Shown: one piece after another, positions 25,745-26,944 of the stretch
How the letters are laid out: every line of letters starts with the position of its first letter
Position numbering within the stretch: the first letter of the stretch is position 1
Assembly (NCBI RefSeq): GCF_006345805.1
Contig: NC_042999.1
Coordinates: forward strand, 72,726,001-72,790,000
Origin: Octopus sinensis
Lineage: Eukaryota
Direction: 5' to 3'
Length of the DNA stretch: 64,000 nucleotides
Program-made: the position numbers and the translations under genes
The notes under the pieces: generated by a model
The model's database searches: none
Told to the model about the DNA's origin: nothing
Seen by the model: only the letters and a program-made list of their open reading frames with translations

Positions 25745-26944
25745 GAAGGGCTTCTTTTAGTTTCCATCTACCAAATCCACTCACAAGGCTTTGCTTGGCC
25801 CGAGGCTATAGTAGGTACCACTAGGTACCACGCAGTGGAACTGAACCAAAATCATGTAGTCAGGAAGCAAGCTTCTTACCACAGTCATGGCAGCACCGAT
25901 ATGTGGGGGGGGGCGTGTGCGTGTATCTATACTCATACATACATACATACATACATACTTACAAGTATATTTCTCCGACTTGGTTTGTTCTTCAGTTTTT
26001 CCGACATTCCAGAATGATATCCAGTCAATCATTTATATCCTTGTATTTCACTAGGTTTTGGTATCGGTGGTATGATCCACAGTGGTCTACAACTGGGACA
26101 GCATTTGCAACTTATCGGTGGATCGAATGACTGTGATGGTCTAATGCAAATTGTAAAGCCACTATTTCATCTGGTTTTTACTTTTGTCCAACTCTATTTT
26201 GTATTTCTCAACCCTAAGGTAAACTATTTATATTTACAGATTTTTTTTCCATTTTTTATTTGGTCTACATGATTTTTTTATGTGACACCGTGTGTTGAAA
26301 CAGATTTTGTTTGATCCTGGGAAGGTCATTATGCCAATAATAAATCTGTAATTTTAAGGAAATCATCAGTTGAAGACATTTCATTCCACATACATCTTTG
26401 AAAATGCATGAACAAATTACTTTTCTCTAATTGTTTATTTTTGTTTACCACAGGTTTGCATCCATCGCTACAAGACATTGGCTCGTTTCGGATTAATGCA
26501 TATGTGCGGCACAAATATCTGTGTCTGGTTTCGTAATATTGTAGTGGAAACACTGCATGAGATGCATTCTGGGATTGCTCACTCTTCCAACGGTCATGGC
26601 AGTCACGGTCTCAAACATCCGCTCGTTGAACATCACCAAAACAATCACACTACACATCCAAGCATTCATATGCATACCGTTCATCACGTTAAAGATACAC
26701 ATCATATAGAACATACTCACAACTCGTCTCTTCAGCTCCATTCTCACCACAATGCAAATGTTTCTTCCAGGCTAATTGCAGGTAATTGTGAACATTTTTT
26801 TTCCTTTTATTTTCCGTGAAAGAAGCACAGGCATGGTTGTGTGTTTAAGAAACTCACCACAGCATTTTGGGCATGTGACATCCGTTACAGCCTTGGGCGG
26901 TCAAACCTGTGTGTGTGAGTTTGGTAGAAGGAAAACGCGCGCGC

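Follow-up and report, generated by a model that had tools for sequence, protein, structure and literature searches.

How otopetrins sense extracellular protons is unsettled, and the linker between the transmembrane helices TM5 and TM6 (5-6 linker), invisible in the cryo-EM structures of OTOP1 and OTOP3, is among the few elements implicated. The Octopus sinensis DNA analysed here, a stretch of 64,000 nucleotides referred to as the window, raises the question what it means for such a channel if this linker is densely set with histidines. Translation of the window in frame 1 placed at 26556-26750 (+) a tract of 65 amino acids with 21 histidines (32.3 %); both the string and the count given in a preliminary description of this DNA (21 His in 65 residues, 32 %) were recovered. 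Against a histidine content of 3.5 % in the rest of the same protein, at least 21 histidines in 65 residues had a probability of 3.7e-15, or approximately 2e-12 once all 65-aa windows were corrected for.

The gene carrying the tract is almost certainly an otopetrin, with the tract located in the TM5-TM6 linker. The exon at 26454-26781 matched on its own the Pfam family Otopetrin (PF03189) with E=4.6e-14 and 52.6 bits, compared to a cut-off of 27.8. A phmmer search against the PDB retrieved Caenorhabditis elegans OTOP8 (CeOTOP8, E=9e-47) and mouse OTOP2 (9e-37), then zebrafish OTOP1, chicken OTOP3 and Xenopus OTOP3. The AlphaFold2 model, based on 75 sequences, had a mean pLDDT of 80.5, a pTM of 0.79 and 12 long helices, in agreement with the two-barrel architecture of otopetrins with two times six helices. 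Foldseek obtained 12 matches in the PDB at E<=1e-3, all of them otopetrins (OTOP1/2/3 and CeOTOP8) with target-normalised TM-scores of 0.74-0.88. The Pfam match, the predicted fold and the presence of otopetrins alone among the structural matches uphold the family assignment made from the first reading. The proposed proton carriers of the family are a glutamate in TM6 and a histidine in TM12, E267/H574 in zebrafish OTOP1 and E325/H567 in CeOTOP8 (10.1101/542308; PMC11343839). Both residues were present: in the alignment with zebrafish OTOP1, mouse OTOP2, chicken OTOP3 and CeOTOP8, SIEYS corresponded to NIEYH/NIEYS and FRFHS to YRMHS/YRFHS. Judged by its sequence, the gene is of the protostome 'OtopLc-like' type, a predicted proton channel.

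Six in-frame exons with AG/GT boundaries and mutually consistent phases were rebuilt between 15604 and 30106 (+), giving a protein of 607 aa. The exon at 15604-15718 (+; acceptor ttttgcag/T, donor GAT/gtatgt) encodes TM1 and was covered by tblastn matches from gastropod and cephalopod-like homologues with 60-72 % identity. The exon at 20310-20574 (+; cttcccag/G, TTG/gtgagt) comprises TM2, a TM2-3 loop that is cytoplasmic and basic, and the beginning of TM3 (...FYLRLGAIG); its phases match both neighbouring exons and its alignment to P0160, the closest relative, is unbroken. At 26055-26218 (+; tcactag/G, AAG/gtaaac) TM3 is completed, followed by the 3-4 loop, which is extracellular and contains Cys153, and by TM4; this exon could be aligned with zebrafish OTOP1, mouse OTOP2 and C. 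elegans OTOP8. The exon of interest at 26454-26781 (+; ccacag/G, CAG/gtaatt), with a polypyrimidine tract preceding its acceptor, codes for the 4-5 turn on the cytoplasmic side, for TM5 and for the initial 74 residues of the linker to TM6, the histidine tract among them; its frame-1 translation is free of stop codons and ends with SSRLIA. The remainder of the linker (Cys312, ...DVNCYW...) and the start of TM6 with the conserved proton-carrying glutamate are encoded at 28829-28981 (+; tctacag/C, CCG/gtaaga), alignable to OTOP1/2/3 and CeOTOP8. The last coding exon at 29307-30106 (+; acceptor atttcag/G) extends as an open frame from the end of TM6 through TM12 to the stop codon TAA at 30104-30106, holds the conserved FRFH histidine of TM12 and is alignable to all solved OTOPs. 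An LRLG motif at 25973 was considered as the start of TM3 and rejected, as it falls within the polypyrimidine tract that directly follows a SINE and a microsatellite and lacks workable splice sites; the true start is YLRLGAIG in the exon at 20310-20574. With three coding exons recognisable upstream in the window, the exon of the tract is the fourth recognisable coding exon, and its former label as exon 6 was not confirmed.

As the exon at 26454-26781 is 328 nt long, its skipping would shift the reading frame and delete TM5. The closest relative, the cephalopod-like P0160, was 69 % identical over all 607 residues, with an alignment continuous across every proposed exon junction. It originates from a 3346-nt Logan contig (run SRR27666085) with a single uninterrupted frame of 1008 aa, most likely an mRNA, so that a histidine tract is present in what looks like a transcript of a related animal. 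At the 5' end, the first base of the exon at 15604-15718 finishes a codon begun upstream, thus at least one further exon precedes it. The N-terminal parts of 11 homologues and the 434-aa N-terminus of P0160 were compared with the window by tblastn and revealed no exon upstream of 15604; a motif scan for the gastropod block RRVSIHRRES...ATFFFG had no match in this region either. A weak match at 11322-11492 was rejected as 5' exon, as it fell into the reading frame of an (AAT)n microsatellite. The N-termini of the relatives comprise 46-495 residues and are poorly conserved; the missing N-terminal exon or exons may be unrecognisable or located outside the window.

Several repeats and open frames surround the gene. 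An interspersed repeat of approximately 350 bp occurred in at least six copies in both orientations with 80-90 % identity, some of them as tandem pairs (14460-15063, 16123-16488, 22858-23198, 40507-40914, 50890-51301 and 56580-57098), one pair being placed shortly before the TM1 exon. A second repeat family was found inside and just after the otopetrin gene (27250-27578, 31257-31610 and 16953-17278). Both families look like SINEs. Past the stop codon of the otopetrin gene, at a distance of approximately 2 kb, a tandem duplication of approximately 920 bp (32156-33089 and 33073-34004, 99 % identity) included CA/TA microsatellites; a third copy at 43235-43636 had approximately 80 % identity. At 62392-64000 (+), a non-LTR retrotransposon fragment ran past the end of the window; its endonuclease domain (PF14529, E=1.8e-5) narrowly missed the cut-off and precedes a reverse transcriptase domain (PF00078, E=1e-14). 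At 38237-39747 (+), several open frames of 110-134 aa adjoin one another in three phases; with approximately 500 aa of protein-like composition in total, they may represent a decayed transposase or another frameshifted gene. Pfam searches with the long frames 19205-20050, 38394-39747 and 9432-10111 gave no match.

Dense histidine codons can have a trivial origin in this DNA. CA-rich microsatellites yield long His/Thr-rich open frames in non-coding regions, for example at 5089-5478 (HTHSHNHTHTHTQPH...) and in many other places of the window, so that in this genome a high histidine content does not by itself mark a frame as coding. The exon at 26454-26781 differs from these microsatellite frames by its splice sites, the conserved helices on its flanks and the lack of repeat structure. 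The abundance of such microsatellites nevertheless gives some weight to an explanation of the tract as a tolerated low-complexity insertion, driven by neutral slippage into a disordered extracellular loop and without effect on channel behaviour. Against this stands the make-up of the tract itself, which has no tandem repeat and mixed histidine codons. Tandem Repeats Finder in its most permissive setting (minimum score 30) detected no tandem repeat within 26556-26750, a search for direct repeats in the tract found pairs of 9-20 nt only, at chance level, and the histidines are encoded by 15 CAT and 8 CAC codons among 14 other residue types. The closest microsatellite, (GT)27 at 26947-27001, lies in the downstream intron. 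The earlier statement that the tract is not microsatellite-derived holds for the present-day sequence.

The AlphaFold2 model assigned TM5 to a helix of residues 188-226, TM6 to a helix of residues 317-350 and the tract to residues 216-280. The TM5 motif and YPCSIEYSL, named before as the flanks of the loop, were located in these two helices. The first approximately 11 residues of the tract were modelled as an extension of the TM5 helix and the remaining approximately 55 as disordered, with a pLDDT below 50 across residues 235-283. Downstream of the tract follow a short predicted helix, a nearly invariant cysteine and TM6. The structure prediction proposed in the preliminary description thus yielded the 12-helix otopetrin fold with a tract that prolongs TM5 and then becomes disordered; the predicted disorder of most of the tract would also suit a neutral insertion. 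The solved otopetrin structures place the 5-6 linker on the extracellular side and do not resolve it (PMC9585144; PMC10101688), and residues 222-247 were omitted from the structure model of zebrafish OTOP1 (10.1101/542308). By homology to these structures, with the termini inside, the 5-6 linker of the window gene is predicted to be extracellular, as first proposed, a placement that fits the solved and published otopetrin topology. Three N-x-S/T sequons for N-glycosylation in the 5-6 loop, the Arg/Lys-rich TM2-3 and TM4-5 loops and the cysteines Cys153 and Cys312 are consistent with this orientation. Each of these two, Cys153 (3-4 loop, ~26134) and Cys312 (5-6 loop, DVNCYW, ~28896), was shared by 90 % or more of 75 homologues; as a candidate disulfide pair they would tie the end of the histidine-bearing loop to the N-barrel.

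The start of the tract most likely coincides with a residue of known importance in vertebrate channels. VETLHEMHS of the window aligned with SETEHFMHN of zebrafish OTOP1, and the tract begins at the histidine matching the conserved histidine at the end of TM5 in OTOP1. Via this alignment, the first histidine of the tract is most likely the equivalent of H229 in human OTOP1 (hOTOP1) and H234 in mouse OTOP3 (mOTOP3). In hOTOP1, the 5-6 loop is essential and H229 affects the proton sensitivity (PMC9585144). The variants H229R and H229K retain proton sensitivity (PMC9585144), thus the conserved histidine may not act by simple protonation. For mOTOP3, a Zn2+-activating site has been proposed that comprises H234 and E238 of the 5-6 linker and, from the 11-12 linker, H531 and E535; Zn2+, Cu2+, Cd2+ and Ni2+ act on vertebrate OTOPs via His/Glu residues of these two linkers (PMC10101688). 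The acid and Zn2+ modulation invoked in the first reading hence finds support in the literature for the 5-6 linker, by H229 in hOTOP1 (PMC9585144) and H234/E238 in mOTOP3 (PMC10101688). That the tract sets in right at this position, for which a part in gating is known from other otopetrins, speaks against a neutral insertion.

The linkers of other solved otopetrins share position and some properties with the tract, but none has its dimensions. In vertebrate OTOP1 and OTOP3 the linker occupies the same place in the fold, is extracellular, escapes cryo-EM, is essential for function and contains a seemingly aligned histidine; however, it is only ~26-30 residues long, and functional studies have dealt with one or two of its histidines, compared to about 110-120 residues and 22 histidines in the linker of the window gene. 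The linker of mouse OTOP2 (PDB 8ug6) begins with VVDESVHQAHSYSGSHGNTSHT, has five histidines in 15 residues and aligns with the start of the tract, but is far shorter, and the literature consulted assigns no role to this cluster. CeOTOP8 (PDB 8ug4/8ug5) was the best match among the solved structures in both sequence and fold, with 22 % identity over the fold alignment. Its segment after TM5 forms a helix at pH 8, is disordered at pH 5 and pushes against the 11-12 loop (PMC11343839), a switch between helix and disorder that resembles the modelled arrangement of the window tract, a TM5 extension followed by disorder. The authors of that study regard the long helix after TM5 as peculiar to CeOTOP8 (PMC11343839).

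The distribution of histidine-rich loops was followed in the family. A profile search in 1.8 billion representative proteins resulted in 722 matches at E<=0.001. A search with the full-length protein retrieved many named otopetrins of molluscs and arthropods, and PF03189 was present in 120 of 120 homologues among its matches listed; a word-indexed protein search with the exon alone retrieved seven exon-sized fragments only, from metagenome or Logan records. In P0160, the tract HEMHHGSSSHGHHSNTHDTDGHHGNSGHRPGNSSFNVSHHHH has 14 histidines in 42 residues within a loop of 89 aa, and 12 of 15 loop histidines aligned to histidines of the window protein, whose loop (122 aa) is longer through two histidine-rich insertions. 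The next relatives were gastropod proteins annotated as 'proton channel OtopLc(-like)', with 46-50 % identity over all 607 residues. A histidine-rich loop was observed in Aplysia, Babylonia, Littorina, Lymnaea, Physella, Biomphalaria, Bulinus, Patella and Haliotis, and every one of the 16 gastropod sequences that come closest in the alignment had one (8-17 % His, 8-19 His in 82-129 aa). These proteins, e.g., Aplysia californica XP_012937048.1 and Babylonia areolata XP_076437542.1, have the same architecture with the loop in the same place, but their tracts contain more Asp and Gly and are not alignable to the window tract past the anchor ETLH(E/V)IH. The loop of a chiton protein had 16 % His (20 in ~122 aa) and that of the bivalve Solemya 14 % (10 in ~73 aa). 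In a crude neighbour-joining tree without support values, on which the clade structure rests, the chiton protein was placed outside the orthologue group and Solemya grouped with low-His bivalve proteins. A second clade contained eight paralogues from the same gastropod species, 41-43 % identical to the window protein, with loops of 73-82 aa and 1-9 % His. Octopus bimaculoides OtopLc isoform X4 (P0068), the sole named cephalopod otopetrin among the matches listed, was affiliated to a clade with low-His loops; being only 41 % identical, it is a paralogue of the window gene. Among the cephalopod-like sequences, a histidine-rich orthologue was represented by P0160 only. Outside the loop, histidine accounted for 2-5 % of the residues in all groups.

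Both flanking motifs were present in 144 homologues, whose loops had a median histidine content of 6.4 %; 31 had at least 10 % His, and 20 of the 144, including wasp, tick and copepod proteins, had at least ten histidines in some 40-aa window of the loop. Histidine-rich loops are a feature of a mollusc orthologue group, in contrast to its low-His paralogues, and recur in some arthropod otopetrins. Such loops were present in 16 gastropod proteins, P0160, a chiton and a bivalve, so that the generality among invertebrate otopetrins, named in the preliminary description as a ground for refutation, applies in part. A peculiarity of this gene, or an adaptation to the marine life of a cephalopod, does not agree with the histidine-rich homologues of gastropods, chiton and bivalve. 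The tract rather appears to be an old feature of the mollusc orthologue group. Being shared across mollusc orthologues, it is more likely to have a function, while the case becomes less singular. A literature search found no description of histidine-rich otopetrin loops and no functional work on mollusc OtopLc(-like) orthologues, which are database predictions.

Sequence and length of the loop are poorly kept (122 aa here, 89 in P0160, 82-129 in the closest gastropods), as might be expected for a neutral insertion. Tandem peptide repeats in some gastropod tracts point in the same direction: the Physella tract contains DHAT/DHVT peptide repeats five times, and such short repeats indicate that slippage contributes to the turnover of the gastropod tracts. 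However, histidine made up ~30-35 % of the tract and 8-18 % of the loop across the cephalopod-like, gastropod, chiton and bivalve proteins, a density held in four mollusc groups while the paralogue clade stays at 1-9 %, and the 12 of 15 histidine positions common to P0160 and the window are difficult to reconcile with free drift. A composition that is kept while the sequence turns over is the strongest argument at hand for selection on histidine in these aligned proteins. We consider a neutral origin without consequences for the channel unlikely.

As the most plausible role we propose, tentatively and with slightly less than even confidence, that the tract is a multi-histidine switch for pH and metals on the gating linker. 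The proposal is built on analogy with the characterised channels: the tract would be attached at that part of the channel which other otopetrins use for gating. At the pH of seawater the 21 imidazoles would be neutral, and the segment after TM5 could take on an ordered or compact form that rests against the TM11-12 linker. Acidification from approximately pH 7 to 5.5 would add some 15 positive charges to the tract, the segment would unwind or expand and the gating equilibrium would shift. The computed charge of the tract changed from -1.7 at pH 8.1 to +12 at pH 6 and +16 at pH 5.5. The same imidazoles may chelate Zn2+, Cu2+ or Ni2+ and couple the gating to trace metals. The spacing H-x-x-H occurs six times in the tract and H-x-x-x-H five times; these spacings would suit both a destabilization of the helix on protonation and the chelation of metals. 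Such a switch would allow the mollusc orthologues to keep the density of histidines rather than the exact sequence.

The same residues could act on proton supply instead of gating. As a proton antenna or local buffer by the pore mouth, the tract would leave the gating unchanged and either raise the flux where protons are scarce, as in seawater of pH ~8, or disperse protons during acid efflux. It offers 21 groups that titrate near neutral pH on a flexible tether, and the tether would reach all putative pore openings, an argument of length that has been made already for the much shorter human loop (PMC9585144). According to the title of a reference within PMC11343839, otopetrins have been reported in the acid efflux of calcifying sea-urchin cells. 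Yet it is the gating linker that carries the tract, not the Glu/His conduction path, and low-His paralogues occur in the same animals; we regard a mere antenna as unlikely, too.

Metal ions could also be the main ligand. In the zinc transporters ZIP and ZnT (CDF), transport is modulated by flexible, histidine-rich loops that bind Zn2+, these loops being mostly cytoplasmic. In the proton channel Hv1, an external pair of histidines binds Zn2+ (PMC10101688). ZIP/ZnT and Hv1 have folds unrelated to the otopetrin of the window and offer a functional analogy only. Within the family, the response of vertebrate OTOPs to Zn2+, Cu2+, Cd2+ and Ni2+ via linker His/Glu residues (PMC10101688), the frequent H-x-x-H and H-x-x-x-H spacings and the richness of the gastropod tracts in histidine and aspartate (13 % and 7 %) would fit a module that binds mainly Zn2+, Cu2+ or Ni2+ and not protons, with the metal acting as activator or blocker or the module as a sink. 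The window tract, unlike the gastropod version, has only four acidic residues in 65, and any histidine-rich peptide binds metal generically, which is no proof of a physiological role. A predominantly metal-binding function is in our view decidedly unlikely, whereas metal binding as the second input of the proposed pH/metal switch is part of the preferred reading.

A more far-reaching version of the switch is speculative and has a low probability. By analogy, the tract would make the mollusc otopetrin a putative steep, cooperative sensor of small changes in near-neutral pH or in trace Cu2+/Zn2+. Its working range would lie between the pH of seawater and that of haemolymph, far from the pH 4-6 of vertebrate OTOP1. 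A helix-to-coil switch of the post-TM5 segment, driven by many protons, would act on the TM11-12 gate, with the number of histidines setting midpoint and steepness. In coleoid cephalopods, A-to-I editing of the histidine codons CAU/CAC to the arginine codons CGU/CGC could additionally tune the putative switch.

With 8-22 linker histidines in one orthologue group and almost none in the sister paralogues of the same animals, the molluscs present a natural experiment. This contrast between loops provides a handle on whether the linker sets the pH and metal sensitivity of otopetrins. It bears on the question whether invertebrate otopetrins work near neutral pH, and hence on seawater chemistry, calcification and acid sensing.
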